DNA of 64,000 nucleotides, from the NCBI RefSeq assembly GCF_000143415.4, contig NW_003314266.1, positions 2,300,827-2,364,826 of the forward strand. Direction: 5' to 3'. The notes beneath the pieces are model-generated. The model ran no database searches, was not told the origin of the DNA, and saw only the letters and a list, made by a program, of their open reading frames with translations. Position numbers and translations under genes: made by a program. This DNA is from Selaginella moellendorffii. Taxonomy: Eukaryota > Plantae > Lycopodiophyta. Positions 1,360 through 9,100 of this stretch are shown here, in pieces (position 1 is the first letter of the stretch; every line of letters starts with the position of its first letter).

Positions 1360-3423
1360 CTAAGTGGCGGGAATTTGAATGCTGTGGAGAAGCACGTAAG
1401 GCGCGGAGTTCTTGGCATCGAAGCTAAACGCTTGCCTGGCGGCGTGCTTGGCGAGATCCGGGTTTCCATGGATCTTGCAGGATCCCACCAACGTCGTCCA
1501 TGAAATCCCATCTCCGGATTGCTGCTGGATCATCTCCCGGGCCCTGTGGAGCTGCCCAGATCGCCCCAGGATATCGACTAGGGCTCGTCGATGTTCCAGG
1601 GTCTCCTCGATGCCGTAGTCCGATCGCATCGATTCCAGGCAGCTGGAGCAGCGATCAACCATCCCGGCGTGGGCGCAGGCCGTGAGGACGCTGCTGAAGG
1701 TCACATCGCTGGGTTCCAATCCCTCCATCGCCATCGCCAGGAAGAGCTCCAGGCTCGAAGCATGGTGCCCATTTAGCGCGTAGACGGCGATCATCGCGTT
1801 CCACGATATGAGATCCCGCCACGGCATTTGATCAAAGAGAGCTCTCGCCGATTCGATCCGGCTGTTCTGCCCCAATCCAGCGATGAGCGCGTTCCAGGAG
1901 ACGAGATCGCGGCACGGCATGGCGGCGAAGAGCGCGATCGCGGCATCGAAGTGGGCGAAATGGGCGTAGCCAGCAATCAGCGACGTCCACGACACCACAT
2001 CCCAGTGTGGCATTCGATCGAAGAGCTCTTGCGCTTCGTGGAGCCTCCCTGCTTGTGCCAGCGCGGCCACCATCGCAGTGGAGAGGATCACGTCTCGGCT
2101 AGGAGAAGGGAATCCCTGATAGAGCTCGATCGATTCTTCCAAGAGTCCGATCTGGGCGTACGCCGCCAGGAGCGCCGTGGTCGCCATCGCGTCGCGCTCG
2201 GGCATTCGATCCAGCAGGCTCCTCGATTCCTCCAGCTCCCCGTGCTGGGCATAGCCCGCGACGATGGTGTTCCAGGAGATTTGATCCCGCCGCGGCATCC
2301 TCTCGAACAGATCCCTCGCGCTCGCGAGATCCTGGCGCCGCGCGTAGCCGGAGATCATCGCGTTCCAACTGACGAGATTGCGCTGCTCCATTGCATCGAA
2401 GAGAGCCCTGGCGCCAGAAAGATCGCCACTCTCGCACAGCCCAGTGATCACTGCATTGCACGACACGATGCAGTGTCGTGGCATTCGATCAAACATCGCC
2501 ATCGCCTCGCCGATTCGATCGTTCTGCGCACACGCCGACAGCATCGCCGTCCAGGAGATCAAATCGCCATAGGGCATCTCGAAGAACACGCGCTTCGCAT
2601 CTTCCAGATGCCCATTCTGGGCATATGCCGCAAGCATGGTGTTCCAGGAAACTATATTCCTCTCCGGCATCCACTCAAACACGTATCGCGCTTTCAGGAT
2701 ATTCCCGTAATGCCCGTGTGCCGCGATCATAGCCGTCCACGAAACGACGTCGCGAAAAACCATACGCTTGAATATGCCTAACACGGTTTCCAGATGCCCG
2801 GCATCGGCATTTGCTGCAAGGAGGGCATTCCACGCTACTAAGCTGTGCTCCGGCATCTTTTCCAAAAGAGAATCTCCCACTGCAAGATGCTTGTTCTCTA
2901 CGCACCCGCAAATCATCGCGTTCCACGTGGCAACGTTCCACGCCGGCATGCCATCGAAGATTCTTCTAGCCTCGTCAAGATACCCGGCCTGGGCATATGC
3001 TCCGAGCATCGTGTTCCACGTCACCACGTCCCTCTCCTCCATCTGATCAAAGAGATCCCGGGCGTCCGCGAGCCGTCCATTTTGGATATACGCTGCCATG
3101 AGAGTGTTCCAGGAGACGAGGTTTCTCACTGGAGGAGGAATCTCTCTAAAGACACGCTCTGCGTTGCGGAGATCTCCATTTTGCGCGTAGCCGGACATCA
3201 TGATGTTCCACGAGAAGGCATTGCGAGCTTGGATGCTGGAGAAGACCTCGAATGCTTGCTCCAAGCTCCCACACTTTGCGTACATTTCCACCAGGAGGTT
3301 CTTGAGCAAGAGATTGTTCGCGAGATCGCTGCGCTCCACCTGAGCGTGAACCTCTCTTCCGCCGGACAAATCCTTGCAATCCCGGCAGCGAGTTATGCGC
3401 TGCGCAAATTCCTGGAGCGCCAT
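1360..3423 (-). CDS. PLS-class pentatricopeptide repeat (PPR) protein with E-type C-terminus, single exon
   Basis: ORF 1360..3435 has many repeats of (D/N)xVSWNAMIxxYAQxG and ends in an E-like motif (WTTLVGSCKIHG...SAPYVLL). First ATG is at 3423. Confidence 0.92.
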   Translation of the reverse strand: MALQEFAQRITRCRDCKDLSGGREVHAQVERSDLANNLLLKNLLVEMYAKCGSLEQAFEVFSSIQARNAFSWNIMMSGYAQNGDLRNAERVFREIPPPVRNLVSWNTLMAAYIQNGRLADARDLFDQMEERDVVTWNTMLGAYAQAGYLDEARRIFDGMPAWNVATWNAMICGCVENKHLAVGDSLLEKMPEHSLVAWNALLAANADAGHLETVLGIFKRMVFRDVVSWTAMIAAHGHYGNILKARYVFEWMPERNIVSWNTMLAAYAQNGHLEDAKRVFFEMPYGDLISWTAMLSACAQNDRIGEAMAMFDRMPRHCIVSCNAVITGLCESGDLSGARALFDAMEQRNLVSWNAMISGYARRQDLASARDLFERMPRRDQISWNTIVAGYAQHGELEESRSLLDRMPERDAMATTALLAAYAQIGLLEESIELYQGFPSPSRDVILSTAMVAALAQAGRLHEAQELFDRMPHWDVVSWTSLIAGYAHFAHFDAAIALFAAMPCRDLVSWNALIAGLGQNSRIESARALFDQMPWRDLISWNAMIAVYALNGHHASSLELFLAMAMEGLEPSDVTFSSVLTACAHAGMVDRCSSCLESMRSDYGIEETLEHRRALVDILGRSGQLHRAREMIQQQSGDGISWTTLVGSCKIHGNPDLAKHAARQAFSFDAKNSAPYVLLHSIQIPAT

Positions 3424-3606
3424 TGCTTTGATCACTTGGAACCAACTTTGGATCCATGACCCCTGTAACTTTCACAGGAAAAATCGTTAAGAAGCTCGCA
3501 AGTTTTAACTAACTCCTACTTCAAATAAAACTTAGAAAAAACGCTACAAACGAAGACTTAGAAGAGATAGAAACTTATCTATGAGAGTACGTAGTAAGAG
3601 ATCATA

Positions 3607-4855
3607 CTACTCGGCGTGAAAGACTGGCCCCTGTTTGATCAAGCAAAGTGAGCTGCGAAGAAAACGTAACGGAGGCAATACGTACCGAGAGGGTATATCG
3701 TTCGTATGTGTGAACTAGCTTGTCATACTTGAGCGTCCAAGCTTCCGTGAGCTTCTTCTCCTTCATCTCCGCGTCTCTCTCGAGATTGGACACCAGCTCG
3801 CTATAGTCCTGCTCCACCTTCTGTAAAAACTGCTTTTTCTCCTCCTTGAGAGCTTTCACTCTGGCGTCCACCTCCTGGATCTTCTGGCGCTGCTTCTCGG
3901 CCTTCTCACACTCCAGCTGCTGCTTGAGTTCCTTGAGCTTCGAGCTGATCCCCTTCTTCTGCTGAATCCAGTTCTCTCGCTGCTCTCTCAGCTCCTTGAA
4001 AAGCTCAAACATTGACAGATTCGAGCCTTCGTTGTTGTCGCTTGATTCGGAAGCTGGATCCAGGCAGTCGAGCCCCTCGTCGGCTGTCCGCGAAGAGGAC
4101 AGAGACAGCGACGATTCAGTGAGCGTCGAGGCGATCTGGATCTCCAGCTTTTTCGGGATCCACTTTGGCATAGTCATGCCAGAAGTCGCCACCACCTCCA
4201 TTGGGAACTGCTTCTGAAAGGTCGTAGACGGCCCCAGAGTGAGCAGCGTTTCATCCCCGGACAAAGCCTCGGTGGTGGTAACTCCAGACGCATTGTTTCC
4301 AAAGTGATCCTGGCATACTGTCGGCGGCCCGCATATGTCATTCGCATCTGGTGTCGACGTAGAAAACGCAGGAGCCCCGTTGACGCAGAGATCAGGCGTG
4401 CTCGAAAGGAAAGGCCTCGAGAAACCCGGACCTAGAGCTTGAAGATGCATCGTTTCCGTGACCATGCTGTCACAGTTTCCCGTCGCTGCATGGGTGCTCA
4501 GCAACTTCTTCTTGTCCTTGATCAAGCGTTCCTTGTAAACCTCCCACCACTTGCCTAGGCGTTTAGCTGTTCGTCCCGGAACTTCGGCCGCAATGCGCTT
4601 CCATTTGTTGCCGTACTTGGTCTGGAGCTTGATGACAAGCTGCTGTTCTTCGTCTGTGAGAGGCCCCTTCTTGATCCCAGGTTTGAGATAGTTCTTCCAC
4701 CTTTCGTGGCACGACTTGGGATCTCGGTCGAGCGGTTCACCCATCCGCTCGGAGATGAGGTTCCAGTCGTCTGCCCCATACTGTGTCACGTAAGCGCATA
4801 GAATAGCGTCTTCCTCGGGCTGCCAGCGTTGTCTATCTTTCGTTGCGATTGACAT
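3607..4855 (-). CDS. ARP: ARP-family (ASYMMETRIC LEAVES1/ROUGH SHEATH2/PHANTASTICA) R2R3-MYB transcription factor
   Basis: KDRQRWQPEED..KSCHERWKNYLKPGIKKGPLTDEEQ..KYGNKWKRIAAEVPGRTAKRLGKWWEVYK is the ARP-specific MYB domain, followed by a C-terminal coiled coil. A probable 55-nt terminal intron 3685-3631 gives ...GPVFHAE* (unspliced stop at 3602). Start is at 4855 or 4861, after a probable 5' intron at ~4921-4867. Confidence 0.93.
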
Positions 4856-5050
4856 TTTCATAAATCCTGAAAGAGTAAACAAATGCCACCATTTGTTTAG
4901 AAAAAAACATTGAGGCGTTACCTTCTCGTGCTGTCTTTTTGCAAAGGTTGACTACATCTTCAATAGAGAAAAGAAAGAACAGGAAAAAAAAAGAGAGAAA
5001 AAAAACCTGGCCAGCAGAAAAAAGAAAAGAGGAAAAAAGAAACAAGGAGA

Positions 5051-5970
5051 CTAACGTGAACTCCAGGACACTAAGGAACAAGAACAATCAAAGTCTACAG
5101 CCATTTTACCGCGATCTTTGATACTAAGAAGAAGATGACGAAGAAACGCCATAAACGAGAAAATACTGGCCAGGTGAACTTCGATGCGGATCACATACTA
5201 CTATGCTCACCACTCAACGAGGAGAAAACGCAAAAAAACCACGACGAGTTTAGCTACCCGAGGACAAGACTATCGCACTTACTTCTACATCCATGGCTGG
5301 TCACGAACTTAGCGGACTGCCATAGCTCCAACTCAAGCCAAGTTCTAAGTATATACACCAACAACGCGACGCAACATTGTTACACAAAAAACGCGAGCGA
5401 TTTAGCGCATAGCCGCCATGACTGAGCAAGCAAGCACAACAGAATTTAACGACAGGCCATGGTAAAAAAAACCCGAGGAAATTAGCGACTGAGAGACGCC
5501 ATACTTTCGATTGTTTAAGGCAGGAAAAAAACCATGGAAAGAAACATCAACTTTAACGAAAGGCAAGCATCTTTTCTGTTCTTTCTTCTCGACTTTAGCG
5601 AGTGAAACGAGCCATGAGAATTGAGCTCAAGAACTTAGCGACAAGCTGCCATGGATGGAGCGAAGACGCTGTGACTTAACGAAACCCAGCCATGGAACAC
5701 GCCGACTTAACGAATGGAAATGTCAAATCCAGCCATGGAACGCACCGACTTAACGCGTGATAGACATGATCGGGGGGCAGGGTTAAGCAATTCTAGCGCA
5801 GCATGGCGAGATTTCACACACAGAGAGCTCTAGCGGCCGAGAGACGCCATAAGGAAATCCTTCCTCTAGCGGATTGCCACAGCCATAGAATGCAATGCAG
5901 ATCCGGGGTTAGCGACACACAGACATGGCGAGCGGCGGATAATTGGAGAGATTTAGCGCAGTGGAGCCAT
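5051..5970 (-). promoter_or_regulatory. Array of 17 short upstream ORFs (M-A-x(n)-R-stop) in the putative ARP 5' leader
   Basis: Repeated plus-strand TTAGCG/TTAACG/CTAGCG...(GC)CAT units read ATG(GC)...CGY-TAA/TAG on the minus strand. All are in frame; see findings. Confidence 0.85.
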
Positions 5971-6080
5971 CTCGCTACACAGATTCAGGAAGAAGAGCTT
6001 ATCTGCGAAGAAGATGAATCGCCGCACCAAAAGAAGCGCCACAGCCTCCAAACGCGCACAAGAACACGGTGAGTGAGGGG

Positions 6081-6140
6081 TAGGGTTCTCTATTTCTTTT
6101 CAGTGCGGGCAATTACCGTGGAAAATGTGGCGAATGGGCC
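6081..6140 (-). promoter_or_regulatory. Putative core promoter/TSS region of the ARP leader (telo-box-like AACCCTA and site II TGGGCC)
   Basis: TAGGGTT at 6081-6087 and TGGGCC at 6135-6140 lie just upstream of the first micro-ORF. Sequence turns AT-rich beyond ~6300. Confidence 0.45.
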
Positions 6141-9100
6141 AAGATTGTACGCGTTCGTACACTGACCACTGCTCTTGTATATTGGTGTATTCTGACCGGA
6201 CGCGTGGCGGTGGCATCTAAAGCAAAGACAAGATCCCTACGGAAAATCTGGTTACTTTTAAAATTTGAACTCGGTTTCCTTTGGTTAAGAACAAAGGCAT
6301 TTGTTAACAGTCTCAAAATCTTAATTTAATTTGTTTAGTTTGATTTAATATTTAAACACAAAGTATAAAAAGAAATAAATGAATGATAATAGAATCACAC
6401 AAATAAATAACAATATGGATTGAAAATTGAAATATATAGTTATTAAAAATCATAGTAAAAGAGTTGCAAGCTATGGCAGTGAATATGGGGTGCATTTTTT
6501 ATTTACACATGTGCAGATATTTGTTTGTGGTTTTCAATTTCACACAGTCCTATTTTGATTGTTATATATCATTTCACTACAATTATGATTATGTGCATTA
6601 CAACATTTATATGCAAAATAGTATACCACACTTTAGTAAAGAGATTGAATACCCTGTTGCAATATGTATAGCATCTGCAATTCTTTTTTGTTTTAAAGTA
6701 AATTGACACTTTTGCAAATGCATCTTTAATGTATTAGAAGCTCCAAATGGTGGCATTGCCAAATTAGTGCAATTGGCAGTTGATAATAGCCAGTGCATGG
6801 AGGCTCATGGCCAACATTTGATGGGTAGTATCTTTAATGCCTAGTTAGCTTTGCTTCTAATTCAGCTGAATTTAGCCACACATTCTTGCCAACTTAAAAG
6901 ACAAAGAAGAAGATGCTAACATGGCAATAAACTAAAAAGGATTCATACTTTGACCATGCATGCCAATATATATATATATAGATAGATAGATGCATTGATT
7001 TGTGAGAAAAAATTTAAGCACACATGTAGTTGCTTTCAAAACCTGCAAGAAATTACTTGCTATAATTATCCTTATCAAATATTAAATCTTTAATTTTTAT
7101 TGTTTTGGTTGGTTCTTGTGGTTCTAAACAAGAGAGAGAGAACTGTTAAAATTAAAATTGAGATTCTTTGGGATGAACAATTTTAAAATTAAATACCTAA
7201 TAACAGTTTAATATTTATAGTTATATTGACTTATGATTACTCTATAAACGGAAAAAGAAATCCATAAAGATCTTGTCTCCATTGGATCTTGTTGGAGATA
7301 CCCCCCACGCATCCAGTCCCAATACACAATAGCAGTGGTCAGTGTATGAATGTGTACAATATTGGCCCATTCACCACATTTTCCATGCCTGCTGACAAAA
7401 GAAAAAGAGAACCCCCTGCTCTTGTGCACGTTTGGGATTCTTAAGCTTTTTCTGGTATTTTCCTGAATTGGTAGTAAATGAACAGAACATAAAAGCAAAA
7501 AGTATACCATCTGATTTTTGCCCCTCTAATTTCTTCTTGCTTGTTGGATTATTTCCCCTTCTTTGTTTCCATCTTGTCTCTTGGATCCCTTGGAGAGGAT
7601 GTAGTTGGCTTTATAATTTCTGTGTGCAACCGGGTGCTTGCTTGATTTCGTCATCCCAGGACACTTTCATGGGCACAGCTTCTATGTGATTAAGCACTGG
7701 TTTGATGGTGCTTTCCTTCCTTTTTCAACTTCAAATATAAATTCTATAATATTTATCCTTCTGTTTAAGAACAAAGTGGGCCATGAAAGAAAACCTCGCA
7801 GCACATACTTTCGTATGCAACCATGACAGAATTCTCATATCAATTGATTGCACCAATTTCTAGAGAGAGAGATCACGCACTCACCTTCTACACATTCTTA
7901 TGAATTCATTCATTCATACTGTTTATACGGTCTTGTAGCACCCACCATGAAGCGAAGATTGTTGTTGCATTGCTCCACGAATGAGAATTCGAGAACTTCT
8001 GGTGGCTAGAAGAAATTAACCACAATTTGTAATATGATAAGAAAACTAAGAGCTTAAAATCTCAGCCGTTAGATTGCCAAATATCTTAGGTGCCTTTAAA
8101 AACTATAAACAGAGTTTAAAGTAATCCAAATGCGAATCAACCTTTTTACAAGTTATAATATTCTACAAAATATTTGGAGGTGCTGGCATATGTAACTTAT
8201 ACAGCAAGCGAAGTTGACGGACAATGCCTTCTCTCACTCTCTTGTTCTTTTCTTCACTATGTGCTCACAGCTCCCAGTGTTCTTAACTGTGCCGGGGGGC
8301 CTCATGTCAGTGGATGGCATCGGTGTGGTGAAGCTACCTTCTTCTTTCCAGAGGCTGACCCCGGACGAAAGCATCCGCAGAGCAACACTCTGGAAATGGT
8401 GTCCAAATCCTCAGACTTTTGATCGTTCCTGCTCCGGGATGCCGGCGTAGAATTTCATTGCGTTGGCTTTGCCGAAGGCTTGGATCTGTGACCAGATTCC
8501 GGCCGCGATGGGCAGGCAGCTCGTGACGTTCACAGTGTCTTGTCGTTGAAAGGACCGGGCAGCAAAAACACACCATCCTGGAAAACAATTTCTAGAGTTC
8601 TTTACCCAAGCTATATAGTTGTGTGCAAGAGCGTGCCAAGGTTCCCAGGATCCTGTAGACAAACTCACCATTTGACAACTTTTAGACAAGGGAATTAGAC
8701 AAGTTCTACCCGGAATCTGCGCCTGGTCCCGGGCAGCGAAGGCCAGGGCCTCTGACTCAGCGCGTCGGGGCTCCCAACATTTCACGGTTCCAATGACACA
8801 AAAGAGCGATCATAAGTTTCTTCACCAGGATTGGCACGAAACAAGTTTTGTCATCTCCTGCTCCCGGAAGCGGCAATGGCTCATGCGGCCGTTTGATCCG
8901 TGCCGATCATCGCCCTCCAAGGGAAGGAATTGGGGGGCGATTCCGATCGAAAAACCATCCTCGCGCGATCCAGGCTCCAAGCTGGCACGATGTGGGCATT
9001 GGCATTCCTGCCATGGCCGTCGTGGCCGTGGCCGTATCCACCTGCCGACAGTGCTATGCAAGTTGTGTGTACCAGTTCGGTACCGAGCAAGCAAGTGCCT

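Follow-up and report, generated by a model that had tools for sequence, protein, structure and literature searches.

An array of arginine-ending micro-uORFs in the leader of the Selaginella moellendorffii ARP gene as a putative gate on its translation

Control by upstream open reading frames (uORFs) is already known for AS1-type genes, and dicot AS1/PHAN orthologues reportedly share a conserved uORF cluster, which Vaughn et al. are said to have described in 2012. In Arabidopsis, AS1 carries three uORFs that inhibit translation, and eIF3h, a reinitiation factor, lifts part of this inhibition (Zhou et al. 2014, PMC3988188). It is also known that the last sense codon of a uORF influences the recycling of the 40S subunit. 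This codon determines whether 40S recycling and reinitiation depend on DENR/MCTS1 or Tma factors, the dependent last codons being ATG, GCG and CTG in human and AAN and TTG in yeast (PMC7494916, PMC8137927). The effect has so far been described mainly from engineered reporters and transcriptome averages. Serial short uORFs are further found in the delayed-reinitiation leaders of GCN4 and ATF4, whose output depends on reinitiation kinetics, and tandem tiny ORFs on one RNA in the polycistronic micropeptide RNAs of tarsal-less/pri.

Here we describe an array of 15 ATG...CGY-TAR micro-ORFs of 3-9 codons each (positions 5309-5970, minus strand), which sits in the ~1.15-kb 5' leader of the Selaginella moellendorffii ARP (AS1/RS2/PHAN) R2R3-MYB mRNA. 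A 33-codon ORF ending CGT-TAG at 5051 brings the Arg-ending units to 16. With the AS1/PHAN uORF cluster this leader has in common the ARP MYB family, the presence of several short uORFs and the lack of conserved peptides. It differs in that Arabidopsis AS1 has 3 uORFs with no uniform last codon reported, whereas the Selaginella leader holds 15-16 regular Arg-ending units and about 6 other uORFs. In the GCN4 and ATF4 leaders, 2-4 uORFs are separated by long spacers and differ in their roles, in contrast to the 15 near-equivalent units seen here with spacers of 12-26 nt. The tarsal-less/pri ORFs encode a conserved peptide motif, while the Selaginella units share only a Met(-Ala) start and an Arg end, and are followed by an ORF of 397 residues. 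The likeness to DENR-MCTS1/eIF2D (Tma22/20/64) control is that there the P-site tRNA after termination on a short uORF decides the fate of the 40S subunit, a step that would become uniform if the last codon never varied. Our literature search found no description of a natural array with one fixed last codon. The Selaginella array can be regarded as what seems an unusually uniform form of a brake already known to act on protein synthesis, and as a probable new variant of uORF control. It suggests that ARP, a regulator of leaf development, may be under strong translational control in a lycophyte.

The identity of the gene was established with coding exon 1 alone, the exons not being joined for the protein searches. 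This exon matches the Pfam Myb family (3.7e-24) with two N-terminal MYB repeats, is 99% identical to SELMODRAFT_140962 'Asymmetric leaves 1', and groups in the tree with the S. kraussiana PHANTASTICA-like protein at 100/100 support. After splicing, the C-terminus of the main ORF matches the database protein. The features of the transcript outside the uORFs are, in transcript order:

6034 to 6068, minus strand: 5' end of the ARP transcript (outermost contig base at 6034 in three runs and at 6068 in run X1)
4965 to 5048, minus strand: CT-rich polypyrimidine tract of the leader, with allelic indels
4867 to 4921, minus strand: 55-nt GT..AG intron in the 5' UTR, which removes the ATGs at 4910 and 4892 (three runs)
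3685 to 4861, minus strand: coding exon 1 of the ARP/AS1 R2R3-MYB, with ATGs at 4861 and 4855
3630 to 3684, minus strand: 55-nt GT..AG intron in the coding region (four runs)
3607 to 3629, minus strand: last coding exon of ARP, ending ..GPVFHAE and stop

The main start is likely the ATG at 4855, since 4861 reads GTG in the other haplotype (L001); the database entry also starts at 4855 (MSIATK..). Each of the two introns measures exactly 55 nt, in keeping with how short introns are in this genome.

The extent of the leader was read from contigs of four runs from four studies, analysed over the region 2600-8000. The runs are flagged only as 'RNA?', and their RNA nature was inferred from spliced joints and a sharp end of coverage. 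The contigs are unstranded and the strand was called from intron orientation and contig continuity. Because both 55-nt GT..AG introns lie on the minus strand, the runs behave as RNA and the transcript is assigned to that strand. The contigs cover 4921 to 6034 or 6068, are unbroken over 5103-6034 without any joint in the array, and connect through the spliced 4867-4921 intron to the ARP coding sequence. The whole array is therefore retained without splicing in a leader some 1,150 nt long. Contig depths, a weak measure, are similar over leader and coding sequence in all four runs. We had considered a gene on the plus strand (ATG at 6014, GT at 6069), which was rejected since RNA coverage stops at 6068, where the run X1 contig continues directly into Illumina adapter; contig depth over 6069-8000 is zero.

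Some further features of the neighbourhood can be mentioned here. The CT-rich tract of about 85 nt lies shortly upstream of the 5' UTR intron, and at this tract the RNA contigs divide into versions of the two alleles. It could be a pyrimidine-rich element, acting either in translation or in the core promoter. Directly downstream of ARP lies a PPR gene of 691 residues (1360-3435, minus strand), and RNA contigs extend into it from the 3' end of ARP. Contigs in the PPR region show many loose ends and joints elsewhere, as expected for a large paralogous family. An Rfam match to mir-2774 at 4711-4770 on the plus strand, inside the MYB coding sequence, scores 24.7 bits against a gathering threshold of 51 and was taken as chance.

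The units share a common design: an AUG, mostly followed by GC, a few free codons, CGC or CGU as last codon, UAA or UAG, and then a purine. Their period in the array is 39 +/- 5 nt. The uORFs of the leader are, from 5' to 3' on the transcript, with the ATG at the second coordinate of each line:

5953 to 5970, minus strand: uORF MAPLR, ending CGC-TAA-A
5909 to 5926, minus strand: uORF MSVCR, ending CGC-TAA-C
5866 to 5886, minus strand: uORF MAVAIR, ending CGC-TAG-A
5830 to 5850, minus strand: uORF MASLGR, ending CGC-TAG-A
5793 to 5804, minus strand: uORF MLR, ending CGC-TAG-A
5750 to 5767, minus strand: uORF MSITR, ending CGT-TAA-G
5707 to 5736, minus strand: uORF MAGFDISIR, ending CGT-TAA-G, a recent duplicate of the MAGFR unit
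5676 to 5693, minus strand: uORF MAGFR, ending CGT-TAA-G, with a synonymous allelic SNP at 5685
5635 to 5652, minus strand: uORF MAACR, ending CGC-TAA-G
5595 to 5615, minus strand: uORF MARFTR, ending CGC-TAA-A
5553 to 5570, minus strand: uORF MLAFR, ending CGT-TAA-A
5515 to 5547, minus strand: exception unit M(FLSM)VFFLP, ending CCT-TAA-A, with in-frame ATGs at 5547 and 5535
5482 to 5502, minus strand: uORF MASLSR, ending CGC-TAA-T
5446 to 5460, minus strand: uORF MACR, ending CGT-TAA-A, whose ATG is AGG in the other haplotype (GL377566.1)
5402 to 5419, minus strand: uORF MAAMR, ending CGC-TAA-A, with a second ATG nested in frame at 5410
5345 to 5377, minus strand: non-Arg uORF MLRRVVGVYT, ending ACT-TAG, which breaks the array
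5309 to 5323, minus strand: uORF MAVR, ending CGC-TAA-G, the final unit of the array
5250 to 5294, minus strand: 14-codon non-Arg uORF ending AGC-TAA, with a nested AUG-UAG at 5285-5290
5191 to 5196, minus strand: minimal uORF AUG-UGA
5051 to 5152, minus strand: 33-codon uORF ending CGT-TAG
4952 to 4957, minus strand: minimal uORF AUG-UAG

A recount on the minus strand agreed exactly with the sequence-only reading that had drawn attention to this region: among the 16 Arg-ending units in 5051-5970, 10 end in CGC and 6 in CGT, the stops are TAA in 12 and TAG in 4, and none uses AGR, CGR or TGA. The total of 16 was right, although its last member (5152-5051) has 33 codons, unlike the units of 3-9 codons. 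That reading had also taken the unit at 5535-5515 as the sole exception. This unit does end in CCT-TAA, one base from CGT, but it is joined by the non-Arg uORFs at 5377-5345 and 5294-5250 and by the AUG-stops at 5290-5285 and 5196-5191. The uORF at 5377-5345 may be a decayed unit. Three minimal AUG-stop uORFs (5285-5290, 5191-5196 and 4952-4957) lie in the leader 3' of the array.

Each of the 16 CGY-TAR hexamers found in 5051-5970 shares its frame with the closest ATG upstream of it, the distances being 3, 6, 9, 12, 15, 24 and 48 nt, and the plus strand of the same interval holds none. In the array itself this is true for 15 of 15 at five spacings (6, 9, 12, 15 and 24 nt), which would occur by chance with a probability of about 1e-5 to 1e-7. 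On the entire minus strand of the window (the whole 64-kb stretch of DNA that was analysed) there are only 34 such hexamers. Compared with 2000 dinucleotide-preserving shuffles of 5300-5975, 16 tiny CGY-TAR ORFs are observed against a shuffle mean of 0.09 and a maximum of 3, and ATG is enriched in the array (19 versus 11.3 +/- 2.6). When the units are aligned on the ATG or on the stop, the information content is limited to ATG with the following GC and to CGY-TAR with the next base, being about 0 bits elsewhere. The variable parts and flanks score like shuffled sequence, except in one recent duplicate pair (5736/5693).

These observations bear on whether the array is a DNA-level element, with transcription factor sites TTAGCG/TTAACG and CCATGG on the plus strand, or a decayed tandem duplication without function. 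The regular spacing and the one recently duplicated pair would agree with such an origin, and TAACG resembles half of a MYB core site. But most units read TAGCG and not TAACG, Tandem Repeats Finder detects no array in 5051-5970, and the region is transcribed as a leader. A tandem DNA repeat or satellite was rejected on the Tandem Repeats Finder result and the shuffled-like flanks. The possibility, raised earlier, that a DNA-binding protein recognises the motif independently of translation runs against the same two facts as the neutral repeat does, namely the in-frame rule at five spacings and the retention of only ATG and CGY-TAR. We therefore consider a DNA-level or neutral origin very improbable. 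The units are more plausibly old and diverged than a recent repeat, with the start and end of the frame held, because flanks and interiors have been randomised while ATG and CGY-TAR were kept. This supports the view that they behave as reading frames, presumably kept by selection, and not as a DNA motif, because the frame is maintained at all five spacings and nothing but ATG and CGY-TAR is conserved.

Two further kinds of leader were tried. A conserved-peptide uORF (CPuORF) was set aside as the interiors hold about 0 bits and 3 of 3 allelic SNPs in the 33-codon uORF are non-synonymous, one of them also removing the internal ATG at 5104. A shunt-type leader like those of caulimoviruses would have a stable hairpin behind a short ORF, and the RNA fold of 5300-5975 shows no unusual structure (z = -0.32 versus shuffles). 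The search against Rfam families gave no match above threshold.

We then have to ask at which level the end of the units is constrained. The sequence-only reading had placed the constraint at the terminal codon, so that the signal might be a tRNA rather than a peptide. Locally, CGY makes up only 0.36 of Arg codons in the long ORFs of the window (CGC, the commonest, 0.28; CGT, the rarest, 0.08), and only 3 of 693 tiny ORFs elsewhere in the window end in CGY-TAR. Given these local frequencies, 16 CGY out of 16 is improbable (p 8e-8 for independent units, 5e-6 for 12 effective units). Under a conservative null, taken from the composition of the unconstrained positions within the array, the Arg wobble base is a pyrimidine in 15 of 15 units versus 0.61 expected (p = 7e-4, or 3e-3 for 12 effective units). 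An internal control is offered by the second codon, which is Ala in 11 units and uses T, G, A and C at its wobble position; 5 of 11 are purines there, against 0 of 15 at the Arg wobble (Fisher p = 0.007).

A signal in the peptide would mean that the C-terminal Arg of the nascent micro-peptide matters, for example for fast release by eRF1, and that CGC and CGU are merely well decoded. The invariance of the codon bases CG in 15 of 16 units would fit this, as would CGC being the commonest local Arg codon. Yet CGT, the rarest, closes 6 of the 16 Arg-ending units (5 of 15 in the array), and AGG, CGA, CGG and AGA, together 0.64 of local Arg codons, are never used as last codon; moreover the wobble base is constrained at Arg and free at Ala. 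We regard the peptide signal as rather unlikely, although a C-terminal Arg combined with a preference for fast codons fits equally well as an agent acting through the P-site tRNA.

The restriction extends beyond the last codon. TGA accounts for 0.38 of background tiny-ORF stops and for none in the Arg-ending units (p = 5e-4), and 14 of 16 units have a purine directly behind the stop (p = 8e-5 versus local composition). A purine after the stop favours efficient termination. Because the Arg wobble, the type of stop and the post-stop base are all restricted while the Ala wobble is free, the data support a constraint that appears to act on codon or nucleotides below the amino-acid level and to span CGY-UAR-purine. 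The first part of the earlier claim, a constraint finer than the amino acid, is thereby upheld. Its attribution to the tRNA has to be shared with an RNA-level CGYUAR-purine signal, either an extended termination context in which A is avoided in front of the stop and C behind it, or a binding site for an RNA-binding protein or for pairing with rRNA, in which the identity of the tRNA would be irrelevant. Conservation crosses the codon boundary into the post-stop base, with TGA and post-stop C avoided, as such a signal would predict. A pure termination context, however, would not need CG at the first two codon positions, and a protein site would not need an ATG in frame at five spacings. Taken as the whole explanation this signal seems unlikely to us, but selection on P-site tRNA-Arg(ICG) and an extended termination signal would account for the conserved ends equally well, and sequence alone cannot separate the two.

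The best explanation of the array, to which we give slightly better than an even chance, is that very short uORFs with efficient termination follow one another as a chain and gate ARP translation via repeated termination and reinitiation. Translation of the units, reinitiation, a role of the tRNA and a repressive, tunable effect are all what we infer. Scanning ribosomes would initiate at the AUGs of the array, translate a few codons and reach a strong stop, where termination would be efficient and would find tRNA-Arg(ICG) in the P site. The 40S subunit would stay on the mRNA, because the uORFs are so short, and scan on. The period of the units and their spacers would set the next AUG just beyond the terminating ribosome, and the main ARP AUG would be reached only after several cycles of termination and reinitiation together with some leaky scanning. 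A given 40S subunit probably uses only a subset of the units and may skip many AUGs, because the spacers are short for re-acquiring initiator tRNA. As every unit has the same end, each cycle would pass through the same post-termination step, and ARP output would for this reason scale as a power of a single per-step efficiency. For 15 steps, an efficiency of 0.9 per step gives 0.21 and one of 0.8 gives 0.035.

A more specific version is that after each of about 15 terminations the 40S subunit would be left with one and the same tRNA, deacylated tRNA-Arg(ICG), so that one property sets ARP output by a power law. This property could be the eviction of tRNA-Arg(ICG) by a DENR/MCTS1/eIF2D-like activity, or the inosine modification or charging state of the tRNA. 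Such a codon-specific multi-step gate is possible but doubtful. The precedent that had been invoked for a role of the last codon is real (PMC7494916, PMC8137927), but the published classes do not single out CGY, which lies outside them; they are drawn from human and yeast, and the host here is a plant. CGC is only 'Tma-average' in yeast (PMC11375166), and our literature search found no precedent for Arg CGY as a special last codon. If the codon-specific gate is true, nature would already have supplied, in this leader, a plant reporter of how the last codon controls reinitiation.

It had further been proposed that the supply of arginine or tRNA-Arg(ICG) is sensed. The array would then be a metabolic sensor, which reads charged or inosine-modified tRNA-Arg(ICG) or the supply of arginine and couples ARP synthesis to it. 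All units do use codons of one tRNA species, and an array of many steps would amplify small changes. But if the last codon of so small a uORF were slow, blockage of the leader would be a likelier outcome than tuning, and in the literature on ARP function that we searched no link to arginine or nitrogen was found. We consider a sensor of this kind improbable.

Whichever agent reads the ends, about 15 diverged micro-uORFs keep the type of last codon, the type of stop and the post-stop base while the rest has drifted. The sequence thereby gives direct evidence that selection can fall on the end of a tiny uORF at which termination occurs, and the leader offers a compact natural substrate for separating the effects of tRNA, peptide and nucleotide context.

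In the other haplotype (GL377566.1, locus L001) the leader is 99% identical. Of 8 allelic differences in the array, 1 changes an ATG to AGG, so that the MACR unit is lost, 2 are synonymous within units and 5 lie in spacers; motif bases are hit in 1 of 8 versus 1.7 expected, numbers too small to show constraint. Because the other haplotype is without the MACR AUG, it shows that single units appear to be dispensable.

The comparison with other plants is narrow on the lycophyte side, where the exon 1 protein word search and the tree gave a clade of S. moellendorffii and S. kraussiana only; Lycopodiales may lack ARP altogether (PMC5622374). A search with the N-terminal fragment returned only seed-plant-like contigs with short leaders. 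The seed-plant ARP leaders (L002-L010) contain several uORFs and no CGY-TAR array. Several of these seed-plant transcripts, of angiosperm-like and conifer-like type, have a short uORF whose TGA overlaps the main ATG (..ATGA..), an overlap that the Selaginella leader lacks after splicing. It is seen at L002:1232-1270, L004:2076-2108, L005:1945-1977, L006:1423-1437 and L007:423-446, the last codon of the short uORF being mostly AGA. This overlap may be a conserved AS1/PHAN arrangement with possible coupling of termination and reinitiation.
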